From Chrysemys picta bellii (Eukaryota): a stretch of 64,000 nucleotides of DNA. The stretch is taken from NCBI RefSeq assembly GCF_011386835.1, contig NC_088813.1, positions 12,400,001 to 12,464,000 of the forward strand, written 5' to 3'. The position numbers were made by a program, and so were the translations under genes. A model generated the notes under the pieces. It saw nothing but the letters and a program-made list of their open reading frames with translations, did no database searches and was not told the origin of the DNA. Below, piece after piece: positions 11,194 through 58,597 of this stretch (position 1 is the first letter of the stretch; each line of letters begins with the position of its first letter).

Positions 11194-12056
11194 TCAAAGT
11201 GGTGCTTTCTGTGCCTTCTTGGTCGCAAAGATTTGAACTGCTTCCTGAAGGTCCATAGTATGGGCCAGCTCATGCTCTATTGAGATTGTTGCAAGGCCGA
11301 CCAGCTTCTCCTGTGTCATTGTAGAGCATAGATGTGTTTTTATTAACTTCAGCTTGGAGAATCTGCGTTCTCCACTGGTAACTGTTACAGGAAGTGTTAG
11401 AAGGATGCATAGAGCAACAAAAGCATTTGGAAAGAGGGTGGTCATCTTATTTGTGCACATATATTCCAGAACAGCCTTTGGAGTTGATCCTGCTGAAATG
11501 TATCTTAAAAGAGCTTTCAGTTCATCACCTAAATCAATCGCATCAATATCGCGCATGTCATCATGTGTCAACACTGTCTCTAGTGCCCTGCATTGCTGGT
11601 GTAGGTCTTCTTCAGGTATAGTGAGGAGTTTTGGAATATCAGACAACATCCCAAATATACTGCTGTGTTCCTTGAGCCGCATAAAACTTTCTTCAACTGA
11701 CTGTATTGCACAATCTAGCACCCGGTTAAAGAATTCAACTTTTAATTGTTGTTTGGGGTCTCTTATGGGATTATCCCGTGCCTCGGAATCAAAATGTCTT
11801 CTTCTTCGGTGACTCTTGTATTCTTGAATGGGTGGGAAAATAGCTTCAGTGTGAAGTTCCTCTGCCAACTTCTGTGCACTCTTCAGAACGTTTTGAAATC
11901 CCTCATCTGACCGGTAAGACCGTAGGTATGACTTTGCTTTATCCAGTTGTTCCATTGCTCCAGATATATCAAGGTCAGCACCTTGGAGTCTCTTGCTTAC
12001 AACATTTATTTCAAACAGTATGTCATGCCACAACACTAAGACACACAGAAATTTGA
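11194..12056 (-). mobile_element. 5'-truncated hAT transposase remnant (ZMYM1-like, C-terminal dimerisation domain)
   Basis: 280-aa open frame with LLTLPVT..SGERRFSKLKLIKT.L.STMTQEKL.GLA.ISIE, the hAT dimerisation-domain signature. It stops abruptly at a Penelope fragment. Confidence 0.85.
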
Positions 12057-12152
12057 AAAAGCAACAGAGGGTCCTGTGGCACCTTTGCGACTAACAGAAG
12101 TATTGGGAGCATAAGCTTTCGTGGGTAAGAACCTCACTTCTTCAGATGCAAG
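12057..12152 (-). mobile_element. Penelope-like (Neptune-type) pLTR fragment containing a hammerhead core
   Basis: Minus strand reads GCAT CTGAAGA AGTGAGG TTCTTA CCCAC GAAA GCTT ATGC...GGTGCCACAGGACCCTCTGTTGC; homologous to copies at 29984, 48015 and 48857. Confidence 0.7.
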
Positions 12153-12533
12153 ATTCATTCAGATTCTTGTATGTAAAATAAAGTAAATGTCTAAACAAAA
12201 AAGTCAGTTTGAAATGAAACATCAAATCTTTTCATTCTGAACATGTCTAAACAATGTTTTCAATTTTTCCCCTCAATTTTTTTCATTCAATTTTTTTTGT
12301 CAAAATCTATATGATTTTGAGGAAGAAAAATTTTTCACCAAAATGGAATTTTCGGATGGAAAATTGTTCTGACAAAAATTTCTAACCAGCTCCACCCTTT
12401 GCCTACTCCTGTAGTATAGCAATTGCTTAGCGATATGTCTTACATAGCAAGACATCTACAGTACCTCTTGCTACAGTGTCTTCTAACTTTTCCTGTCTCT
12501 GTAGATCACCATCTGACGCCAACCTCCACTGAG

Positions 12534-15500
12534 ATGGCACCCAAGAAGAAAAATCCCAAGAAGAACAAAGTGGACAAGGGCGAGGATCCCCCGGCCCATG
12601 TGATGGAGGAGGACACTTTGCTGGATATCGATCACCTCAACCACGTGAACGGTCTGTATGAAAATGTCTCCAATGGTTTCCGCTGCACTGCCACAGAGGT
12701 CAGGAACCCCAACCATGGAGGCAGCCTCCTGGAGGAGATGAGTCAAATGCAACAAAAGCAGTTCCTCTGTGACCTCACCATTGCCACCAAAACCAAGTCC
12801 TTCGATGTCCATAAGCTCGTCATGGCTTCATGCAGCGAGTATTTCCACAGCCTGCTGAAGAGAGATCCCAACTTGCCACAAGTAGAATTCAACGATGTCT
12901 CCCCTCTGGGCTTGACCACCGTTATCACTTACGCCTACACCGGTAAGCTGAATCTCTCCCTGTACACCATTGGCAGCACCATCTCAACCGCCAGCCGCCT
13001 ACAAATACATGCTTTGCTCAACATGTGCAGTGACTTCCTCATTCAGGAGATAAATGTAGAGAACTGCATGTATATCGCCAACATCTCGGAGACGTACAAC
13101 CTCAACCAGACCAAGGACGCCACTCGAAAGTTCATCCAGGAAAACTTCCTGGAGTTCTCGGAGACTGAGCAGTTCATGAAACTCACCTTTGACCAGCTGA
13201 AGGAGCTGCTGATTGATGATGGTCTGCAGATCCCAAATGAGGTCATTGCCTTCCAGATTGCCATGAAATGGCTCGAGTTTGACCCTAAGCGAGTCACATA
13301 TGCTGCCAACCTCCTGAGCAACATTAGATTTGGCACCATATCAGCTCCCGATTTGGTCAACCATGTGCAACCAGTACCACGGATGATGCAAGATCCTGAG
13401 TGCCACAGGCTGCTGGTGGAGGCTATGAATTACCATCTGCTCCCTTACCAGCAAAATACCCTTCAGTCCAGAAGAACCAAAATCCGTGGAGGCCAAAGGG
13501 TGCTAGTCACAGTTGGTGGCCGTCCAGCTTTGACCGAGAAAGCTCTTAGCAGAGAGATTAGCTACAGGGACCCGGATGGAAACTGGAACAAGATGGCTGA
13601 GATGCCAGCAAAAAGTTTCAACCAGTGTGTCATTGTGATGGATGGGTTCCTCTATGTGGCAGGAGGGGAAGATCAAAACGATGCTAGGAACCAGGCTAAG
13701 CATGCAGTCAACAGTCTGTGCAGGTAACAAGAATTTCCTCAAGGCAAGACAGTTCCCATGAGAGTGCATTTCAAGTACTCAGTTTACAAGCCTGTGGCTG
13801 CATACATACCTGCCACAATCATCAATGGGGTTTGAACCTGAGATCTCAAATGCAGGCCTCTATCACATAAGCTAAAGGAGAACTCCTTTTGCTGTGCATG
13901 AGTAGTAGGTTGTTATAATCTTTGGGCCCGGCCATTAGGGACAGATAGGATTACACGCATTAAGCAACAGCATATTCTGTCATCATTTTTTCTGAGGATA
14001 TTTTTCACAAGGGTAAATGAGCAGGAGGAAAATACAGGCTAAACCAATCAGAAATATCTATTATACACATATAGCTCCAAGAGCAGATAGAGTGAAATAC
14101 TGCTACGTTAAGGACTATCCCATCAGAGAAGCAGTGTAGACCAGCAGAGTGGGCACTGGAGTGGGTGACAAAAGACCTGAAATCTGTCCCCAGCTCTGCC
14201 ATTGATCTGCAGTGTGACTTGGCCGAGTCACATTGCCTCTGTTTTTCCTCCCACCCTTTGTCTGTCTTATCTATTTAGATTGTAAGCTCTGTGGTGCAGG
14301 GAACGTCTCTTACTATGGGTATGTACAGCTCCTAGCACAACTGGGGCCCTGATCTCAGCTGAAGCCTCCAGGCTCTACCATAATTCAAATAAATAATAAG
14401 AACATCTGTTATTTAGTCAGACAGTTAATGATACAGGTCCAGAAAGCAAGAGCAGCTTTCATGTAATTTCTCTGCCTTTTTGTGGCCCTTCAAGGTTATC
14501 TTTTCTATTCTGGCTAGAGATTGCTCAAATCTCTATATAAATTATCAGTTTCCATTCTTTAGCTGATTCCGAGTTTGGCAGAATTAGCTTAAAAAAACCC
14601 TAAATTCACCCTCTGTATAATTTCTATTGTTTGTCTTCTTTCTTTCTTCTTTGTTGCATAGCTTAAGTGGAGGGTTTGGGTTTCTGGAAAGTTCTTATGA
14701 AACATGTCATTGGACTGTGCGGGGATTATTGTTAACAGAGGAGAAATGTAACCCTGGCAACACCAAGTGGAGAATGTTGTTGAAAATCCAGACACACAGT
14801 TGGGGTTGGGCTTGCACCCAGCGATTCCGAATAAAGAACGTGGATGCTACGAAGGAAAACCAGCACAGTTAATAGCATTTTGCCTCCCAGAAATCTGTGT
14901 TCAAGTTTGCCTTCCTGACAGGAGTTTATTAGTCTCAGTCTAATCCCTCTGAGACACTGTCCCCAGATCACCAAACCATCACAGAGTTCGGACCAGTTAC
15001 TAGCCTCTGCCAGGGAGAGAATGTGAGAAAGAACCCCCTCACGGGACAGATGTCAATCGTGTCTTCATGCACTACTAGCAGGCTTTCAAATACTACAGGG
15101 ATGAGGACAGAACCACCCCTCTAGAATAGAATAGGTTTAAGGATTGGCTTGGAAGGGCTTCTTATAGGTAAAGATACAGTGCTAGAAGCTTTTGGGGCTC
15201 AGGATTGGGAGGGCAGGCTAGCCTAGGTCAGGAATACACAGGGGATACACTGCAGGGCAAGCAGCATGTTCAGAGCCTGCCTGGCCCAGGCCATTCACGA
15301 CCACTGAATTCATTCAAAAGTCAATAAAACGGGACCATGTATTTTTCCTGCAGCTGAGAAAGGCCTCAGGATTCCACCCGTCAGGTCTCCTCCTTTCTAT
15401 TTCTAGCCTGTATCTTATTCAGCATTTCTGGCATTGCCAGACTGCCCCGGGATTGCTTTCCGGGTACAGTAACAGCAATGCCATCTGCCAGCGGGGGCTC

Positions 15501-16464
15501 AGGGTCGCACGGCAGCCGTTTGCCTTGCAGCATGTGCTCAGCTTTGCGCTGCAGGGGCCCGAGGGGGATGTGATGTAGGATCTGTGGCTTGAGAGATGCA
15601 GGAAGATCAGTAACTTGTCGTTGTCAAGCAGGGGTAGACGGGAGAGATCATATGTCCCCAGGGCAGGTTCAGAGCAGCCCTCCGCAGCATGGGATCAGAG
15701 GCTAGGTGACAGCTCTTCCTTCTCTCCGCAGGTATGATGCTCGCTTCAACGCCTGGCTGCATTTGGCCAGCATGCTGCACAAGAGGACTCACTTCAGTCT
15801 GAGCGCCTACAATGGTCTCCTCTACGCCATCGGCGGGCGCAACGCCGAGGGGGTCCTGGCCTCCATCGACTGCTACATCCCTTCCACCAACAGCTGGCAG
15901 AGCAAGGCCAGCATGGAGATCCCTCGCTGCTGCCACGCCAGCACGGTCATTGACGGCAAGATCCTAGTCACCGGGGGCTACGTCAACAACTGTTACTCGC
16001 GCACCGTGTGCAGCTACGAGCCCAGCACAGACACCTGGAGAGACCGGGCTGGGCTCAGCACCCCCCGGGGCTGGCACTGCACTGCCACCTGGGCTGATCG
16101 TGCGTATGTCCTAGGGGGCAGCCAGCTGGGCCCCCGAGGTGAGCGGGTGGATGTGATCCCCGTGGAGTGCTACAATCCTGACACAGGCCAGTGGAGCTAT
16201 GTGGCGCCCGTGCCCACTGGGGTCAGCACGGCCGGGGTAACGATCCTCGACGGGCGCATCTGCCTAGTGGGAGGCTGGAATGAGAGTGGGAAGAAATACC
16301 AGAAGTGTGTGCAGAGCTACAACCCGGAGATGAACGAATGGGCAGAGGAGGAGGATCTCCCCGAGGCCACCGTGGGTGTGTCCTGCTGCACCATCACCCT
16401 CCCGCACCACGGCAGCAAGGGATCCAGGACTAGCTCAGCGGCATCGGCAGCGGTCAGCATCTAA
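12534..16464 (+). CDS. Kelch-like BTB-BACK-Kelch protein, KLHL31 paralogue (probably the fish klhl43 lineage), 640 aa; join(12534..13723,15732..16464)
   Basis: MAPKKK start, BTB ([28 protein letters not shown]), BACK, Kelch GG repeats and C-terminal SAAVSI match KLHL31 collinearly. The AG|GT..AG|G phase-2 intron gives 1923 nt in frame. An acceptor at 12504 implies an unlocated upstream non-coding exon. Confidence 0.92.
14140..14400 (+). mobile_element. MIR/CORE-type SINE in the KLHL intron
   Basis: Core CTGTGTGACTTGGCCGAGTCAC-like motif followed by an L2-like tail TTAGATTGTAAGCTC...CCTAGCACA and an A-rich end. Confidence 0.5.
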
Positions 16465-21746: not shown

Positions 21747-29614
<7,868 letters not shown>

Positions 29615-31242: not shown

Positions 31243-34200
31243 TTATGACCCAAAGTGGGAGAGTCCAATCGACACCAGAACCATCAGACCCACAGTGATC
31301 ATTAGAGGCCAGCTCACAGCAGCAGCCAGCAGTGGCGGGGCTGCGACCTTCTTCTTTCGGGACACAGCGGTTGACGGCTTCTTTTTTTGCTTCTCTCTTA
31401 AGCACTCCAGCAGAAACGTCAAGTTATTGGGCGGAAAGAATTTGGTGCCAAACAGGTTGCATTTGGGAATGAAAAAATGAGGCAGATGAGCGGTTGCCAC
31501 CTGCTGAATGAAATTGGCCCGGACCCTTTCGAAACAGTGAGCAACGCTGGAGGGGTTCCCATCCTGGGCCTGCTTCCATTGCAGCAGCGTGTGAAAGAAA
31601 GACGTCTCAGCATGGTAGGAACTCAAAGGAGCCAGTTCCAAGGGGTGCTCTGTCTTCAGGGCTCCCAAAAGACTTTCCAGCATCTGCAGACATTCTGGCC
31701 TAGAGAGGAGAAAGCCACATTCTTGGCATTAGCAATTTCTGTTGCTATTGGGTCAAATCCCAAGCTCCTTACCGTTTTAATTCAGGCTGTGACCTCGGTG
31801 GGAATTTTGCCTAAGTAAGGGCCTGGGGGCCACAGTGTGGTAGGCATTTGACCTACGAGAATGTAAAAAAAGGGGACAAATGCTGCTCCTACAGAGTAAG
31901 TCAACGAAGTTAAATATAGCAACATTGGATTTATGCAGGTGTAACTGAGAGCAGACTCTATCCCAAGGTCCCTGCCCTAGAGAGCTGACAATCAATGGGC
32001 CCAATCTTGCAAATGCTGACTGCCAGGCATACCGTGAGCAGTCTCATTGACAGATGGGATTACTCAGAAAAGTAAGCATTACGCTCAGTAATAGTGTTTG
32101 GAGGATTGGGCTCTAATTAATGAGGTCTGCCTGGAGAAGGGGGAGGGGGGGTAATGCAGCTGAAGCAAGTGACAGAGTATTGATTTCAGTCTAGGTCTTA
32201 TTAGCTCCCTAGTTGTTGTTTGTTGTTGTTTTTAAATCACTATTAAAGTCTCAGCTATTTTACTTTCGCTAGAAGTTGAGCATGGATCACGCCTGGCTAG
32301 CGCTAAAGGGAAATGAATATACTCAAATGCATCATCATGTTCATTAATAATACTCTATACTTCGTTTGCACCTTCCGGCTGAGGATCCCAAAGCACTTCC
32401 CACAAATCAGGATCATTGCCCCCATTTTATGGGTGTGTGTGTGTGGGGGGGGAAACTGAGGCACAGACTGGTGCTGTGACTTGCCCAAGGCCCCACAGTG
32501 AGCCAGTGGCAGAGTGAGGAATAGAATCCAGGAGTCTAGATTCCCAACCCTGTGCTCTAGACACTCAGACTCCCAGCTGATAGCAATCAATGCTTTACAT
32601 TTCCATAGCACCTTCTCTGCAAGGATCTCAAAGTGCTTAACAAAAGAGGGTCCAGGTTCAAGTCAGGGTTTCCAGGGCAAAGAAAGTAAACTATGTCCAA
32701 CAAAACATGAAGTTACAGCACTGATGCTAGTCTGGCCTGTCTCGACCCGGGCTGGGGGATACAAAGACCTCTGGCCCAGCCCTGGCTTTCCAGACTTGCA
32801 GACATACTTGGTGTGGCAGTGGTTTGCCACATGCACGTACCTGCGGCACGTGGTCGTCTGACACTTCCGGGTGCTGGTGTGGCTTTTCAAAATCTCCTTT
32901 TCCACATGAGAGAAAGACATTTTCCAGGTCTCTGAAATAACAGCAACCCCAGTGTCAGCCTACACCTCCCTCAGCTGGGCACAGAAGCCAGGCAGCAGAG
33001 GACACTGTACAGGTGATGTGGAAATCATTTGTAATGTATTTTTGATTCCAGTATTGCCTGAGAAGTCACCCCTAACTGTGAAGCTCATAAAACAGCCCCA
33101 GGCCACTGGCTCACCCTCATCCCTCTCTCGTTCCCAGGGCTTCTTCACTCTTCCCTGTGCTATCCCTCCCCAGTTCGGAGTCCCCCCTCTCCTCCCATGC
33201 CTGCCACTCTCCTGGGAACACCTCCTGCTTCCTTGTGGGGTAGCTCTAGGTCGAGGACTTGAACTGAAGGGAAAAGGGGGAGACATCATTCCCCTCAATA
33301 CATGTTATGTATGGGCTCCACCGAGGTCTCCAGAACACACAAGCCCTGTCTCAGCATGGCATACCCCACCAGAGGCTAGAGATACTCTCTGCTGACTCTC
33401 TGCAGCTTTTCTTCTGGGAGACTAGCTTAAGGCCAGTGCATTTACCACAGTGGGATACAGAGAATGTGGGGGCGGCTTTGGCAGTGCTATGAAAAGAGAG
33501 GAGGGGGCATTGGCCCTGTGGGCTGTGTGGGTTCCTTCCCCTGAGGGGGTGTTCATTGTCCCAGCTCTGCACACTACTACACCCTTCTCCAAGCCTCAGC
33601 CTGACAACTCAATCCCTAAGCACTTTCCCAGGAGAACATGCTGTGGTGAGGGAGTTACCTTTGTTATCTTGACCAGGGGCCTGTTTAGCAATGAAATAGA
33701 GGGTCTTCCTCAGATATGGCTCCTTCTCCCCCAACAACTGCTTGACATCCATCCCTTCGTCATTTGAACTGGGCCATTGGCCAGAGATCTCCAGAGCAAG
33801 GACCAGGTCAATAGACATGAATGTGTCACCTCGGTTGTCCACCATCACTAGGGGCACCGCTGGGCTGTTCTGCTTTTTCCTCTCCAGCCTCATCTGCCAT
33901 CCAGGAAAAGGCACTGAGACACCAGACAGACAGTGGACAGACCAATGGGAGAGCTTAGAAAGAGGCAGTAATTCATCAAGGGGCTTGTTTGTGTTTAGAT
34001 CAATGTCAGCCAAAGAAACCAAACCAAACAGAAACTCAACCAAATCCCTTAGGGAAGGACTCCTAGTGGGGAACCCACAGCTTTCCCCAGAAGAGGGATG
34101 TGGGGGGAGGGATAGCTCAGTGGTTTGAGCATTGGCCTACTAAACCCAGCATTGTGAGCTCAGTCCCTGAGGGGGCCACTTAGGGATCTGGGGCAAAATC

Positions 34201-36764
34201 AGTACTTGGTCCTGCTAGTGAAGGCAGAGGGCTGGACTCAATGACCTTTCAAGGTCCCTTCCAGTTCTAGGAGATGGGATATCTCCATAAATGTATTTAT
34301 TTAGATGGAGTCCAGCTCACTCAGCTCTGTGTAGTGTGAAGGATCCCAACTTCAAGGGCCTAATACCTCAGCCTTTCACCTCTGGTGACCTGGGTTCAAA
34401 TCCTACTTGAGATCACGTGAAAATGAGCTTGTGGGTCTCAGCCTAGCCCCTACCTGAGCTACGCTGCAGCTGCTGCTATTTTAAGAATGACTTAGGCCTG
34501 GACGAGCAGGAGATGTCACAGGTCAGGATGGAAGGGGTGATCTGGGTAGCTCCAGCACGGGGACACTCACCTGAGTAGAACACTTTGATGAACTGATCCA
34601 AGTGCTGCCGGAACTCCGCCATGATGCTCCCTGGGGACACAGTCTGCCCGTCCTCCAGCAGGAAGGCGGCTGGAAAGCTGCGGGACTTTCTCAGCAGAGT
34701 CAGGGTGTAGAAGAGCCCATCGTACCCCTCCACCTCAGCGTACTGAATATAATCTGGAATCGGCAGGCTCAGCAGCACGTCAAAGTTATTCGGGTGCAAG
34801 GGCTGTAGACAGAGTCTCCTACTGGAGATGCTGCTGAATTCTTTTCAGGCGAATCCCCACTTCTCCTTTCCTCCACTCATCCCCTTGATCCCATCCCTTC
34901 TCACCCCTCCTTCCTGCTTTCATTCCCTCCCTGATCCAAACTCTCTAATGACCGCCTACCTCCCCTTTTCGCTGCTGCTGTCGCCCTAGAAGGCTCTGAC
35001 TGCTCCCACCACCTACCCTCCCTCTCCTTGTTACCTGGTAGCTGCTCCCCGACGTCAGTTCTCTCACATCCCTGAAGTAGGGTCTCTCGGGACACTCATT
35101 CAGGTAGCTAAAGAACTGTCGGAAGAAGGCATGGAGAAGATCGACTGCGTTGGCCCCATCCAGCTGTTTCAGGCGGAGGGACTTTGCCCTCTCTTTAATC
35201 CGGGTGAGGTTGTCTTTCTTCCAGTCTTGAAAGGTTCGCATTGCAGCTGAGGTCCCTGGTTTCTCACTCAGATCAGCGGAGGCATCTTGGGAATAGACCT
35301 GCCCCAGGTCTCCTAAAGGGAAACATTAGAGATGAGAGATCCCTGGCACTTCAGCCAGCTTCCTCCATATCAAACCATGCTGCTACTGCTTCTCCAATGC
35401 AAGTTTAGGTCCCGATCCTTCTTCCCTTGCTAAACTCCAATAGGGGGAGGAGCTGGGCCTCGTTTTGTGCAGCATCAGTCTTACAAACTGTCGTAAACGA
35501 TTTTGGCGGAAAGAGAAATTAAGGAGTGAAAGAGAAAGGAGACTTGAAATGTGATGGAGGAGTTGGAGACGTGGGGAAGCAGTTCCAGACAGCGGGTAAT
35601 GCAGAGGAGAACGCTCCCATGCAGTCAGTGGGAAGATTGCGAAAAGGAACAGCGGGAGTTGGCTGAGCAGAGGGAGCGGGAAAGAGGAGTAAAACGAGAT
35701 CAGATCTGTGAGGTCAGCTGGAGTAAACAGTGTCAGAGATGCCTTTATCTCAGTCTAAGGGAAGGCTGATGTGTGTGTTTTGTACTGCGAGATGCTGCAC
35801 CTCTGTTAATTCAGACCAATCATAAAAGAAGCCATGCTGGCATGGCTGATATCCACCTTCATTGCGGCTGCAGTGCCTAGCGTACTTACAGGACACTGCT
35901 AATGACAAGGAGAAGGTCCATGGTTTTGAGGTAATAGGATACTCTCCTCCCATAGTGCTGGATTCATCAGGAATTTAGGGATTACCGTATTATGGGGGTG
36001 GGGGACATCTAACCCAGTACCCTGTCTCTGACAGTAGATACTTCCAAAAAAGCATCACTCCATTCCCACCTACCGTAGACTCAGCTATTGTGCAGTATTT
36101 TACCACAGAAGGTAATTTCCTCCTGACCTCAGCCAGTGAGCAGTTTATACCCTGAAGCCTGAGGATCATTGGCCTGGAAAACTTTTAGCTGAATTAGTGT
36201 AAGTGCAGGTGCTATTCTTAATCAGCCAAATGCTTGCACTTTTAAAAGTCCAATTTGGGGTCCCACAGCCGACTCACCCACCCAACTCCCTCGAATCCCA
36301 AAGAGTGGGGAGAGGGGAGGACAATAACCCGTGTCATCTAGCTACCCCACCACATGCTGTGAGATCATCAAACTGAAAAACAGTGAAGCCTGGAGCATTT
36401 CTGAATGGCCATTTACAACCAGTGAAGGTCCAATAGAGATTCCCTGACCTGCAGCTTCCCTGTGGAGCTTGTCCAACTCCACCTTCCACCGGCTCTGGGT
36501 GCCAAGGCTCCGGAGCTGCTGGGAGGTCTCCGGAGGATGGGAGCCTAAACTGTCTAGGTTCCACTGCTTCCTTGCCCTGAGGTTTGAAGATTCGGCTGCT
36601 TCCAATGGGGACAGGGCTCGCTGGCTGGCTGTTCCCTCTGTGTCTCCTGGCTCTTTGCTTCTGCCGGCTCTGCCCTTCCTCTGAAGACCCTTCCATACCC
36701 TACGGTTCTTGGCCGGCGTAACATTGAGGGGCGGAGAGCTTGCACTTAGAGTCGGACCTGCCAT
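31243..36764 (-). CDS. Cyclic GMP-AMP synthase-like (cGAS/Mab-21 family) paralogue with C-terminal hydrophobic tail, 542 aa; complement join(36449..36764,35035..35312,34571..34802,33659..33913,32841..32931,31243..31699)
   Basis: Exons of 316/278/232/255/91/457 nt, all GT-AG with compatible phases 1,0,1,1,2, give 1629 nt with no internal stop. Motifs GSSYQ|PLHPNNFDV, SPAVPL, SIDLVLALE..QWPSS..EG, YFIAK, ETWKMSFSHVEKEIL, SSYHAETSFFH and HFFIPKCNLF match human cGAS in order. Exon 1 is inferred from phase match and Kozak context and is less certain than exons 2-6. Confidence 0.88.
34105..34301 (+). mobile_element. Tortoise polIII/SINE (tRNA-derived head, CR1-like tail)
   Basis: GGGATAGCTCAGTGGTTTGAGCATTGGCC A-box head; tail GGACTCAATGACCTTTCAAGGTCCCTTCCAGTTCTA; AT-rich end. 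Confidence 0.85.
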
Positions 36765-36909
36765 CTTGCATTTGGACCCTATGAGATTCAAAGAGAATCC
36801 AGGTGTTTATTGTGATTCCAGGTTTCTTTTCTGATCTCCGCCTCAGCCACCTCTGTGTCAGGAGAGAGGGATGCTGCCCTTAGTCATAAAAAAAATAATA
36901 ATGCAGGGC

Positions 36910-37020
36910 CAAGGCCGGCTCTACCATTTTTGCCGATCCAAGCAAAAAAAAAAAAAAAAAGCCGCCCGAACTGCCGCCCCAGGCACGTGCTTCCTCCGCT
37001 GGTGCCTGGAGCCGGCCCTG
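36910..37020. mobile_element. Short hAT MITE just upstream of the cGAS-like ATG
   Basis: TIRs CAAGGCCGGCTC / GAGCCGGCCCTG; 8-bp TSD TGCAGGGC. Confidence 0.85.
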
Positions 37021-39584
37021 TGCAGGGCCATGAAGCAATGTGTTCATTTCATTTTCCTCTTAGGAAATGGGCAAAGGGAACCCAAAGCAGCCGGCAGGAG
37101 AATTGCCTCACTGCATCCTACTCATGGCAACAATTAGCATTTCCACCATGCTTATCTTTAAAGAGCTGTACAGACATTAACCGGGGGATCCTCCCAGCAG
37201 CCTGTGACACAGATACATTATTAGCCCCGCTTTGGACCCTGGGAACCAGCCAGCCAAAGAGGTGAAGAGACTTGCCCAAGGCCACCCAGCAAGGCAGTGG
37301 TAGAACAGGACCTAGCCCTCAAGGAGCTCCTGGGTTCCAAATGTGTTGCCTCAGTCTCTACGCTGTTAGGGATATGGCTTTCTGTCCTGGCTAGGGGAAG
37401 CAAAGATACAAAACAGCCTTCAAACCCAGGCAGCTCTCACATGCTGCCCCCGATAGCAAAGTCACAGGAAATGATCACGTGACCTGGCCAAGAGAACAGG
37501 TTAGGGGACAGGCCAAGTCCATGATACGGGGCACCTTGGGGTCATTGTTAAATATTTCAGTGTGGGCTGTACAGGTGGGCACGTGCACGTAGCAAAACCA
37601 TAGGATGGTCAGAAAGGGGACAAGACCTTTGAGGCGCAAGCCGGGCAGATAAATGCCTCCCACATCCAATGACCGGACTGAACGTTGTGGCTTGCAGAAA
37701 ATCAGCATCACGCTGTGGTCTCCTAGTGGCCTGCTGAATGGCATAATTTGACAACCAAACAATGTGGGGCTTGGATGCTGATCCATAAGAGGACCCCTGG
37801 CTGACAAGGGGATCTGCTGTAATTGTTGGATGACCACTGGCATCCTCCCTTCTTCCCAGCTCTGACACACCTGCTTGCCCGTGGGATTCATGAAGAGTGC
37901 CTGCTCTTCCATTCTTTAATACCAGTTCACTCCTCCTTGCTCCCATGTCATATACCGTCTAGGCAGGGTAGTGGAGCTATAACCTTTTCACCTTCTCCAG
38001 CTGAGATCCAGCCAGCCACAAAGACCTCATCCAGCACCTTTCCGGCCAGAGGGCACATCTCAGCCCTCATGTGCCCAGCGGTCTCATCTGTCTCTTAAGA
38101 AGAGCATTCAGTTGTGCATTGGACTCATCTACAAGACATTCCAGGGGGCCCCTACATTGCTTTCAACAGGCAGCTGCTTCTTGTCAGGGCTAGATTTCTA
38201 GCAGGATCAGCAGACAGCTGGAGTTTCTGACTTCAGGACACATCCTAGGGCATTGCTGTCCTGTTTCATCCATGGGACAGTCTTTTGTAAGAGAACCATA
38301 GAGTTCAGCCTAGCCTACACTAGAAAGGGTTTTCTAGTACAGACATGCTTATAGCAGAAACTTCCCTGAACAGAATAAGCTACATTGGCAAAAGAACTTT
38401 TCTTTTTTTGCCGGTATAACTGCATATAGACTGGGGGCTTTTTGCCAGCATTAATATGTCAAAGCATCACCCCACTTAACTGACACTATTACACTGGCAA
38501 AAGTTTCTAGTGTAGACCTGGTCTTCCAGCCTGAGGACGCAGATGGGTTTGTGTCAGCGCTAGATTGCTCATTAGCAGTCAGTTGAAGCAATTGGATTAA
38601 TAATTTCATAGCCATCTGTCCAGACAGGGCCCAGCCACAGCCGTGGTGGAACGCCATTGACTGAGTTCCAGCAGGGCTGCCTTTGGCCCACCCTCGTGTA
38701 GGATTGCTCTTTTCAGAGATCAGCTGCAACCAGCGTCACTTTTGAAAAAAAAATTCTCAGCTACCACCTTTGTCTCTGGAGTCATTAATAAATTCTCAGT
38801 CACAGCCGGCTAATTTATTGTCCTGATTTTCTTCCTGCCTCAGGAAGAAAAGCAGCCAGTAGGGCCATTTAGTTGTTAGAGGGACAGTCAAAATTGGACA
38901 GACTAAGCTGGAGCCTTTCCATGCATTTGGTTCCCTGTACAAACCTATGCAAGTGTCCTCATGCCAGAGAGGAGTAACCCTCAAGAGAACACAGGCTGTC
39001 CTCATTTTCACGTAGCATCCCGAGAGTTGGGAGCAGAAGGACTTTCAGATTAGAAGACATGAGGCAAGTTCTGCCTTGAGGTATGTGCAGCTCTCTCTAC
39101 CCGTTACAGAAGCTGTCCCATGCACACAGGGACATTGGGTCTACCCCTCAGAAGTCCACAGGTGGGGGAGGTTTCTGCTGGGAGGGGTCCTAGGCTACAG
39201 ATACCTGGCTCCCCAAAATCCAGAATTGCTAGCTCTAGAGTGGCCCTCTGTGTCACTGCTCTATGAGAGGGACTACCCCCCCCCCCCACTTCACTTGAGG
39301 TTATGCACTGAGCCTGGACTGGACCCTCAGACCTAGAGAGCTCCTTAGCAAGGGCCAGCATCACCCATGGGAGTGTGAATGTGTGGCATTTAATAAAGGC
39401 ATGTTGCTACCATTTCTGTTCCTGCTGGAGTGACCCAAGATAGGAGGCAACGAACGAGGGAAGTATCTCAAGGGGAAAGAGGCCATAAAGAACCTTAAAA
39501 CATGGCTTAGAAGGAGCCATGGCACCATTTTAGCTAGCAGTACTAGATCTAGACACCACAAACCCATTTTATGCTATGAGCAGA

Positions 39585-40953: not shown

Positions 40954-46493
<5,540 letters not shown>

Positions 46494-47350
46494 TCAGCTC
46501 TGTCCCACCCAGAGCCACCTCAAGCTAGTAAGGATGTAGGTTTATTGCCAAGTACAGGTTTAATTGGGGACCAGGTTTCTAACTGAACAAGGAAGGTAGA
46601 GTGAGCAGAGTTGCTGGGAGGTCACTGGTCCCCACAAACATAGGTACCAGAGGCAATTAGGCTAGGAGAGTTTTTGGTCACTGACCAGGCCACCTGAGCA
46701 TTGTTGGCTACAAGACAGCTCCTGGAGGAAGTTGTATCACACACACACCTCTGAATGGTCACCCTACTACTGTGTGTGTGTGTGTGGGTATTAGAAGCCT
46801 ATATAAGAAAGAGACCCCAAAATCAGGACTGTCCCTATAAAATAGGAACATCTGGTCACCCTACCCAGCAGCAACCAGGCCCTCTGAACTGCCAAGTAGC
46901 CAGCACAGAATGCCATCTAGCAAGCAATCCTGCAAGAACAGTAGCCTCCTGTGACTGCCCTTCAGCCCAATTCACAGCACCTGCATCATTGTGGGAGGGC
47001 CCCTGTCTGAGCTCCGGGCAGTGCCAGTACAGGAGAGCTAAGAGGGGAGGGGTGAAGGGAACAGCTGTAGTCCCTCACTCAGGAAGTCAATGAGCAGGTG
47101 TCAGGCCACAATTAGCCTGTTCCTAGCCCAGACGGGCTACTAGGTCTGGGAAGAAAGCACCCTCCTGCCAGAGGTATCCTAGCAGGTACTTCCCTCTCCC
47201 CACCCACGGGAGAGTGGAAATCGCCCATCTCTAGCCCGTGGAGGAGGGAAAAGCCCAGGATCCCAGGGGAGCTCAGAACTGGACATGGACAAGCCCAGCT
47301 ATGAGCCCCAAGCACAGCAGAGACACAACCCCTACAGGGCCGGTACTTAC

Positions 47351-49719: not shown

Positions 49720-49853
49720 GGATAGATCACTTGCTGATTCCCTGTTCTGTTCATTCCCTCTGGCGCACCTGGTATTGGCCAATGTCGGAAGACAGGATAC
49801 TGGGCTAGATGGACCTTTAGTCTGACCCAGTCTGGCCTTTCTTATGTTCTTAT
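49720..49853 (+). mobile_element. CR1 3' end
   Basis: ...GGCTAGATGGACCTTTAGTCTGACCCAG...TTCTTATGTTCTTATG octamer tail. Confidence 0.7.
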
Positions 49854-50075
49854 GATTTTGCTAAGATGCTTGACATAAAAATGCCTTTGCCCACCCCTGT
49901 CCTGGCCTCACAACACCAGCTTGGCCACCCACAGGTCAAAACTGGAGCCACTGTGAGCAATACCAGGCAATACCAGGGGGTTGATTGCGGCCCAGGGCTC
50001 TTTCCCTGTAGGTTGGTGGTGTGACTCCAGCATTCCAGGAGTTCCTGAATTTTGTTACCATGGCCATTCAGTGGC

Positions 50076-50296
50076 CAGGGCCGGCTCCAGGGTTTTGGCC
50101 GCCCCAAGCAGCCAAAAAAAAAAAAAAAAAGCTGCGATCGCGATCTGCGGCGGCAATTCGGTGGAAGGCCCTTCGCTCCGAGCGAGAGTGAGGGACCATC
50201 CGCCGAATTGCCACCGAATAGCTGGACCTGCTGCCTCTGTCCAGAGTGGCCGCCCCAAGCACCAGCTTGCCAAGCTGGTGCCTGGAGCCGGCCCTG
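50076..50296. mobile_element. hAT MITE
   Basis: TIRs CAGGGCCGGCTCCAGG / CCTGGAGCCGGCCCTG; 8-bp TSD TCAGTGGC. Confidence 0.9.
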
Positions 50297-50628
50297 TCAG
50301 TGGCTCATGTCAGACAAGTGGCTCGCTCCAGCCCCAGTGATCAGGTGTTGTTCAAGATGGGACCAAATCCCAATGTTTTATCTCTGTGAAGGGCAGAACC
50401 AGTGCTTGGACCCAAATATTCATAAATCTGGGCCTGTAGCCAAGTGCCATGAGGTTCAGATTTGGCCCATTATACAGAGATATTCTAGCAGCAATCTGAG
50501 CCTAGATCCAAGTCGGTACCAGGAGGCCGCTCCCAGGCCTAACTCAACAGAGTGACCCCCGAACACGGTCCTCTTTAGCAGCGCTTCAGGGGGTATCCCA
50601 AAGCCTGGAGTTGCTGGGGGAAGATTAA

Positions 50629-54479: not shown

Positions 54480-58376
<3,897 letters not shown>

Positions 58377-58597
58377 ATTCTCCTCCAACGTCGCCGTGTG
58401 CTCAGAGGCACCAACAGTGGGTGCCCAGCCCCCCCAATCACAGATCAGTGTCTGGACTCGCTTATCCAGGACTGGCTCCTGGGCAGAAAAACACACTGGA
58501 AGAGCTTCCGAAGGAAAGGAAGCTGAGAGGACTCTCTCTCTTGTTTATTGGGCTGCACATGTGGGGTGGTTTTCTTGACTTGCTCACTGGTGGTGTG

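Follow-up and report, generated by a model that had tools for sequence, protein, structure and literature searches.

Here we describe a gene of the cGAS family on the minus strand (positions 36764 to 31243) of a stretch of the Chrysemys picta bellii genome 64,000 nucleotides in length (RefSeq assembly GCF_011386835.1, contig NC_088813.1, positions 12,400,001 to 12,464,000), hereafter called the window, to whose first letter all positions refer. Our preferred reading, held with a little more than even confidence, is that the encoded protein is a membrane-anchored, catalytically dead or crippled cGAS-like regulator or scaffold and not a synthase of cyclic GMP-AMP (cGAMP). The gene falls in a second vertebrate cGAS lineage, and since its reptile sub-branch (here termed IIb) has, as judged from the alignments, lost key residues for the binding of metal, nucleoside triphosphate (NTP) and double-stranded DNA (dsDNA), the protein is most likely not a cGAMP synthase.

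Six minus-strand exons join into an open reading frame (ORF) of 542 amino acids without internal stop, with the ATG at 36764 and a stop codon ending at 31243; all five introns are bounded by GT..AG and have phases 1, 0, 1, 1 and 2 (Table 1). The first-pass annotation had put forward this six-piece model from the letters alone, and the same model was recovered here. All five junctions are present exactly in contigs of three RNA-like sequencing runs (X1, X3 and X4) from three organisms of closely related species, with joints at 31698/9 to 32840/1, 32931 to 33659, 33913 to 34571, 34802 to 35035 and 35311/2 to 36448/9 and CT..AC ends on the plus strand, while a DNA run (X15) covers the introns and contains none of the five joints. 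These RNA-like runs were chosen for holding approximately 0.14-0.27 of the words sampled from the 5.8-kb stretch; with exons amounting to 28% of its length, such a share fits coverage of exons only. The X3 contigs show nearly no differences from the window, those of X1 and X4 diverge from it at a few percent of sites, as close relatives would, and a contig of organism A is identical to the window over 34605-34802 in exon 3. A Trachemys isoform of 548 amino acids in RefSeq uses a donor 18 nucleotides further on; the RNA contigs favour the 542-residue form. The gene is thus intact, as had been claimed, and it is transcribed and spliced.

The locus encodes a true member of the Mab-21/cGAS nucleotidyltransferase fold family. 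Searched as single exons against Pfam, exon 4 matched Mab-21 (PF03281) and exon 6 matched Mab-21_C (PF20266) with the E values given in Table 1, and exon 3 alone gave a weak Mab-21 match (E 0.013). The only PDB entries matched by sequence were cGAS chains (exon 6, E 7.5e-14; exon 4, E 1.4e-7); the same search with exon 3 alone returned no match, which is uninformative for a piece so short and divergent. As a proxy for the fold we used the AlphaFold2 model of the Mauremys orthologue (P0110, 542 amino acids, 91% identical to the Trachemys protein P0111), in which the predicted local distance difference test score (pLDDT) is >90 over most of the core, <50 over residues 1-126 and approximately 78-86 along a helix at residues 521-540, with residues 504-519 disordered. 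The 50 best PDB fold matches of this model are all human, mouse or pig cGAS, with template modelling (TM) scores, normalised by target length, of 0.78-0.87 (the best reaching 0.82-0.87) and sequence identities of 28-30%, so that the fold check that had been proposed turned out in favour of cGAS.

Canonical CGAS of the turtle Carettochelys, mapped from its protein to its locus, comprises five coding exons, separated by introns of phases 0, 1, 1 and 2 at ..GSYYERVK/ISAP.., ..KSMT/KIKV.., ..GRVLK/EDTW.. and ..GVKCC/RKSC..; introns 2-5 of the window gene coincide with these in aligned position and in phase. The first-pass annotation had made this comparison with human CGAS and concluded that the gene was a genuine CGAS-family member; the match was borne out against the turtle gene, which was used in place of the human one, and it supports that conclusion. 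An extra phase-1 intron in the N-terminal region is common to the window gene, its Anolis counterpart in IIb and the IIa genes described below. Canonical CGAS (MB21D1) and the window gene agree in fold, in the position and phase of four introns within the catalytic domain and in a disordered basic N-terminus, and are 28-32% identical; they differ in clade, in locus, in the extra N-terminal intron, in the tail anchor and in changed catalytic and DNA-binding residues.

Tree position and synteny both place the gene as a paralogue, in agreement with what had been proposed. Canonical CGAS of Carettochelys has a GIDA-domain gene (MTO1) on one side and a KH-DEAD helicase gene (DDX43) on the other, an order (MTO1-CGAS-DDX43) that also holds in human, whereas the window gene is flanked by eEF1A and by RPL11, the latter followed by a BTB-Kelch gene, in the same order in Trachemys, Caretta and Anolis. 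In a careful IQ-TREE analysis of 46 proteins (unrooted), two vertebrate cGAS clades are split at 100/100. Clade I holds mammalian, bird, turtle, gecko, amphibian, bichir, teleost, catshark and ray cGAS, while clade II, which contains the window protein, holds proteins of Mustelus shark, sturgeon, teleosts including the grass carp cGASL (P0240, Ctenopharyngodon idella), lungfish, platypus and crocodilians, both turtle 'cGAS-like' genes and squamate genes. Identity as the canonical CGAS orthologue was rejected on account of this position (100/100) and the other locus. As both clades hold cartilaginous fish, ray-finned fish and tetrapods, the second cGAS lineage appears to be ancient, its duplication most simply predating the split of the jawed vertebrates on this unrooted tree. 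No bird or therian member of clade II turned up in these searches.

The amniote node of clade II is supported at 100/100, and within it IIa (genes of approximately 587 amino acids) is sister to platypus plus the turtle and squamate genes of IIb, including the window gene. The platypus gene probably belongs to IIb; a placement outside sauropsid IIa+IIb was not rejected by the approximately unbiased test (p=0.08), and any timing of the IIa/IIb duplication is tentative. Measured from the amniote node, the window protein lies at the end of a path approximately 2.4 times longer than that to Chrysemys IIa (XP_042711040.1, P0003). The window gene and IIa share the second clade and the extra N-terminal intron(s); IIa differs in having the full E-D-D triad and a full zinc thumb, in its slower evolution, in lying on a different large chromosome and, as annotated in turtles, in the absence of the tail. 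Orthologues of the window gene, found by word-based searches, are named 'cyclic GMP-AMP synthase-like' in RefSeq in Trachemys, Mauremys reevesii (542 amino acids), Caretta, Pelodiscus, Anolis and many squamates. The window protein is 97% identical to that of Trachemys (in the tree alignment) and 80% to that of Pelodiscus, against 46% to the turtle and crocodilian paralogue of approximately 587 amino acids and approximately 32% to canonical turtle cGAS. In RefSeq, teleost clade II proteins (P0016, P0106, P0145-P0259) mostly carry the plain name 'cyclic GMP-AMP synthase', which is also given to the clade I proteins of those species; Astyanax, for example, holds both P0032 and P0245 under one cGAS name, a practice that may confuse the literature on fish cGAS.

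The functional data on possible relatives come from fish. Killifish cGASb (472 amino acids) gave no detectable cGAMP in HEK293T cells and no induction of immune genes, and zebrafish cGASb showed minimal activity (PMC13694710). In grass carp, cGASb binds STING in competition with cGASa and reduces the interferon response, while both MITA/STING and MAVS are targets of cGASL (PMC11264591, PMC7582293); an early evolutionary study had taken the zebrafish cGAS duplicate as species-specific (PMC4117786). The grass carp cGASL (UniProt A0A7H1J..., P0240) resembles the window protein in clade (100/100), cGAS fold and C-terminal hydrophobic tail. Unlike the window protein, with N-D-D, K414E, K439E, a short thumb and a core charge of +5, fish cGASL/cGASb have a full E-D-D, an HGxxKTCCE..KCCRK thumb and a core charge of +16, and the transmembrane sequences of the two are unrelated.

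The last 22 residues of the window protein are hydrophobic, comprising the helix W521-F540 and two further residues, and are preceded by the basic cluster SRKKK; the best 19-residue window of the tail has a mean Kyte-Doolittle hydropathy of 2.17. There is no N-terminal hydrophobic segment, the N-terminus being disordered and polar, and a single helix within approximately 30 residues of the C-terminus is the arrangement expected of a tail-anchored protein, so that insertion of this helix into a membrane is predicted. A C-terminal hydrophobic 19-mer is present in 126 of 153 clade II proteins of at least 400 amino acids, as against 2 of 65 clade I proteins, one of the two being a low-quality model. 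It is present in grass carp cGASL and kept in Crocodylus IIa; turtle IIa and colubroid snake IIb lack it as annotated. In a phmmer search with exon 6 (1.8 billion representatives), the Anolis 'cGAS-like' protein aligned right through the tail, and the helix pattern WPLMIT.GL..L.S..L is conserved between turtles and lizards where the preceding linker is not. Judged by this distribution, the tail anchor is an ancestral trait of the whole second lineage and not a novelty of the window gene.

MiD49 and MiD51 (MIEF2 and MIEF1) are membrane-anchored scaffolds of the mitochondrial outer membrane with a Mab-21 fold and without nucleotidyltransferase activity, and the window protein could similarly be a membrane scaffold, unrelated to STING or MAVS, that recruits other machinery. 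We consider this improbable. It would account for the architecture of a membrane anchor joined to a degenerate nucleotidyltransferase fold, and for the conserved helix sequence, which suggests a specific partner within the membrane; however, both sequence and fold are cGAS-like with only cGAS chains matched, the anchor is C-terminal instead of N-terminal, and the lineage's only functional data, those from fish, indicate regulation of interferon. Membership of the MiD49/51 family itself was rejected, as the anchor is on the other end and the sequence and fold matches are to cGAS; these proteins are only distant relatives, absent from the sequence matches and the top fold matches of the window gene and its Mauremys proxy.

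Substitutions relative to cGAS, such as K414E, are numbered here as in bat cGAS P0120, whose numbering agrees with that of the human protein from about residue 300 onward. In clade I, fish clade II and IIa, the catalytic triad is E-D-D and the zinc thumb HGxxKTCCE..KCCRK. Within IIb, the triad is N-D-D in the window protein and Trachemys, G-D-D in Caretta and E-D-D in Mauremys, all four with an H-x5-C-x4-C thumb carrying a 3-residue deletion; Pelodiscus has E-D-D and a thumb without the deletion in which the first CC pair is C-R, squamates have E-E-S/N with the first pair C-R or C-Y, and platypus has E-S-R and has lost the His and the first Cys. Across 37 non-IIb proteins, 59 alignment columns reach a conservation of 92% or more; the window protein departs from 20 of them, with changes that include R376K, a deletion of C397, C405R, K407P, K414E and K439E. 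In cGAS structures, K414, K439 and R376 line the nucleotide pocket, and K407 and K411 contact DNA. The canonical thumb pattern, H-x5-CC-x6-C with flanking lysines, is not retained: the residues aligned to 397-398 are deleted and K411 is replaced by Q. The core carries a net charge of +5 (+4 to +7 in IIb turtles), compared with means of +14 in clade I, +15 in IIa and +16 in fish clade II.

Altered catalytic residues, a broken zinc thumb and a hydrophobic tail had all been reported by the first-pass annotation. The first and last of these stand, in N204 and W521-F540; the thumb is better described as shortened and degenerate but not gone, since His378, Cys384, Cys389 and Cys394 remain, with a single C in place of CC. 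Even close relatives differ in the length of the thumb, as organism C (run X4) has an in-frame insertion of 6 nucleotides in the thumb loop at 32866, between codons R382 and K383. A further 3-residue deletion directly after the GS motif distinguishes testudinoid turtles from Caretta, Pelodiscus and all other clades. Active cGAS-like receptors (cGLRs) share the motif h[QT]GS-x8-20-[DE]h[DE]h-x50-90-h[DE]h (Li et al., PMC9980059); the window protein reads SGS...N204-F-D206-V...I-D311-L, with Asn at the first acid and Ser before GS.

An active membrane-tethered cGLR, with a non-canonical metal site (Asn for Glu) and a ligand other than dsDNA, producing cGAMP or another nucleotide signal, is likewise unlikely. 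D206, D311, the GS motif, Y419 (Y436 in cGAS) and S418 are kept, sister turtles retain E-D-D, the predicted fold is intact in the Mauremys model, the core is under purifying selection, and many cGLRs seem inactive only for want of a known ligand (PMC9980059). Set against this are the failure of the motif at N204, the charge reversals K414E and K439E in the nucleotide pocket with K in place of R376, a core poorer by approximately 10 positive charges, and the loss of the third acid in squamates and platypus of the same sub-branch, by which catalysis is evidently dispensable for retention of the gene.

The coding sequence was rebuilt from the Trachemys and Caretta loci, and the estimates of the ratio of non-synonymous to synonymous substitution rates (dN/dS) rest on these two comparisons with the window. 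Against Caretta, dN/dS is 0.39 over exons 2-6 and 0.305 over the core (amino acids 141-497), where 30 of 56 changes are non-synonymous, far below the neutral expectation (binomial p=5e-5). The core is under purifying selection, and the ratio near 1 that the first-pass annotation had held would speak against a functional gene is not seen there. The Caretta core ORF is intact, and all splice sites are intact in Trachemys as in the window. Gradual conversion of a transcribed gene into a pseudogene, with constraint relaxed after duplication and no function left, would agree with the progressive erosion of catalytic and zinc-thumb residues, the thumb indels among close relatives (+6 nucleotides in organism C), the disrupted Caretta exon 1, the longer IIb branch and a window-Trachemys ratio not distinguishable from 1, but we judge it very unlikely in view of the intact 542-codon ORF and splice sites, the intact and constrained Caretta core, the retention of orthologues in turtles and squamates, the conserved transmembrane helix with its flanking motif and the spliced transcripts of three species.

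In the reading that we prefer, the tail anchor would hold the cGAS-fold domain on the cytosolic side of an internal membrane, that of the endoplasmic reticulum or the mitochondrial outer membrane. The second lineage split in two in amniotes, and its faster-evolving part IIb (turtles, squamates and probably platypus) has lost catalytic and DNA-binding residues, and presumably the enzymatic activity with them. At those membranes the protein may act on STING and/or MAVS signalling, as a brake or a scaffold, by analogy with fish cGASL/cGASb and from its architecture. The first-pass suggestion of a decoy or regulator is plausible by homology to these fish proteins.

A number of observations weigh against this account. 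Mauremys and Pelodiscus orthologues retain E-D-D, so the loss of the first acid is recent and lineage-specific, and inactivity across all IIb turtles rests on K414E and K439E, whose roles are taken from cGAS structures. Hydropathy alone proves neither membrane insertion nor which membrane is involved. By sequence only grass carp cGASL is placed in clade II, the killifish and zebrafish cGASb being assigned from length and naming; the fish relatives keep complete motifs, hence their reported inactivity may have another cause, and a function in fish need not carry over across >400 million years. Between the window and Trachemys, dN/dS is 0.6-0.8 on only 15-25 substitutions, which is not distinguishable from 1 and may reflect a recent relaxation. 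Finally, frameshifts in other turtles, which the first-pass annotation had taken as evidence to the contrary, occur in Caretta exon 1, where deletions of 4 and 20 nucleotides shift the frame (L002:4221-4512 compared with window 36449-36764), although not in its core. The N-terminal region is evidently dispensable in Caretta as exon 1 is broken there, and the annotated Caretta protein starts in another exon that resembles window 37560-37958 (minus strand).

In its fullest form, the regulator hypothesis would start from a pair of ancestral jawed-vertebrate cGAS genes, of which the first was soluble and the second anchored by its tail to an organelle membrane, one amniote descendant of the anchored copy having become a pseudo-enzyme docked by its transmembrane helix beside STING or MAVS as a brake or co-receptor and kept in turtles, squamates and perhaps platypus. 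We offer this scenario tentatively and regard it as doubtful.

Table 1. Coding exons and sequence features of the cGAS-like gene (positions in the window)
Feature	Positions	Strand	Evidence or remark
Coding exon 1: from Met1 into codon 106 (first base only); N-terminal region, basic and of low complexity	36449..36764	-	RNA contigs join exon 1 to exon 2
Coding exon 2: amino acids 106-198, G194-S195 motif near end (codons 35044-35049)	35035..35312	-	ORF and RNA contigs
Coding exon 3: amino acids 199-275; N204 (34785-34787; E in canonical cGAS), D206 (34779-34781)	34571..34802	-	First two catalytic-acid positions
Coding exon 4: amino acids 276-360; third catalytic acid D311 (33807-33809)	33659..33913	-	Mab-21, E 2e-6
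Coding exon 5: amino acids 361-390; K364 (R376 in cGAS), shortened zinc thumb H378-x5-C384-x4-C389	32841..32931	-	Alignment
Coding exon 6: amino acids 391-542 and stop; Mab-21_C; E399 (31675-31677; K414 in cGAS), E422 (31606-31608; K439 in cGAS)	31243..31699	-	Mab-21_C, E 6.5e-15
Basic cluster S504-R-K-K-K508 before the anchor	31348..31362	-	(T/A)VSRK(K/R) motif common to squamate orthologues
C-terminal hydrophobic helix W521-F540, then 2 residues; tail-anchor-like transmembrane segment	31252..31311	-	Hydropathy and AlphaFold2 model of orthologue

The transcript extends beyond the features listed. RNA contigs cease to match the window at 36779-36781, directly after a minus-strand AG, and continue with 8-28 extra letters; an upstream 5' exon exists, and no exact donor for it was found upstream as far as 41 kb. 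A promoter scan returned one core of an interferon-stimulated response element (ISRE) at 37056 and, near 36820, an IRF-like AAAAGAAAC. Both probably lie within an intron, because the RNA contigs continue past the acceptor at 36779 into the upstream exon, and an interferon-responsive promoter was dropped as a candidate.

Interspersed repeats of very high copy number occupy 34010-34400 (intron 3), 32264-32651 and 35950-36143, with a depth of approximately 1e6 in the DNA run and in the thousands in RNA-like runs; the repeat in intron 3 accounts for many of the spurious joints and loose ends among the read alignments. The same repeat with a long poly-T/poly-A tract occurs at approximately 36816-37262, upstream of the cGAS-like gene, and at approximately 49853-50337, between the eEF1A genes, with near-identical ORF translations at both sites.

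Directly downstream of the cGAS-like gene lies a multi-exon RPL11 gene (approximately 22300-29600, minus strand; an exon ORF, for example, at 27238-27567), with a GC-rich stretch at 28-30 kb; protein P0002 of Crotalus horridus wrongly fuses the cGAS-like gene and RPL11. Two eEF1A genes lie head-to-head at approximately 41800-46600 (minus) and 54900-58400 (plus), and an eEF1A gene is likewise upstream of the cGAS-like gene in Trachemys and Caretta. The window eEF1A exons differ at several positions from EEF1A1 and look like those of another eEF1A paralogue. Long ORFs of BTB-BACK-Kelch type (KLHL31-like) are present at 12420-13724 and 15706-16461 (plus), and Anolis has a BTB-Kelch gene at the same relative place beyond RPL11. 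An open stretch of 298 amino acids at 11197-12090 (minus) resembles, by eye, a hAT/ZBED-type transposase fragment.

The finding is real but less novel than it first looked. The gene had been called undescribed-looking, a description that does not hold: RefSeq already names its orthologues 'cGAS-like', and it belongs to the lineage of the studied fish cGASL (and, by extension, probably cGASb). In the open literature searched, no description was found of a tail-anchored cGAS, a 'cGAS2', a C-terminal transmembrane cGAS or reptile cGAS-like genes, and the ancient paralogy, the lineage-wide tail anchor and the constrained reptile pseudo-enzyme branch seem not to have been described there.

The biology of cGAS-STING has been built almost entirely on a single soluble mammalian enzyme. 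Most of the non-therian jawed vertebrates sampled keep a second, tail-bearing cGAS lineage that is predicted to be membrane-tethered, and one reptile copy is expressed and under selection despite its decayed catalytic and DNA-binding features. Work on fish is contradictory, with 'cGAS' at times described as a negative regulator, and part of the reason may be that databases give the label 'cGAS' to both of two ancient paralogues. A natural membrane-anchored pseudo-cGAS, if true, would provide a handle on the restraint of STING and MAVS and a clean example of an innate immune sensor that has turned from an enzyme into a regulator.

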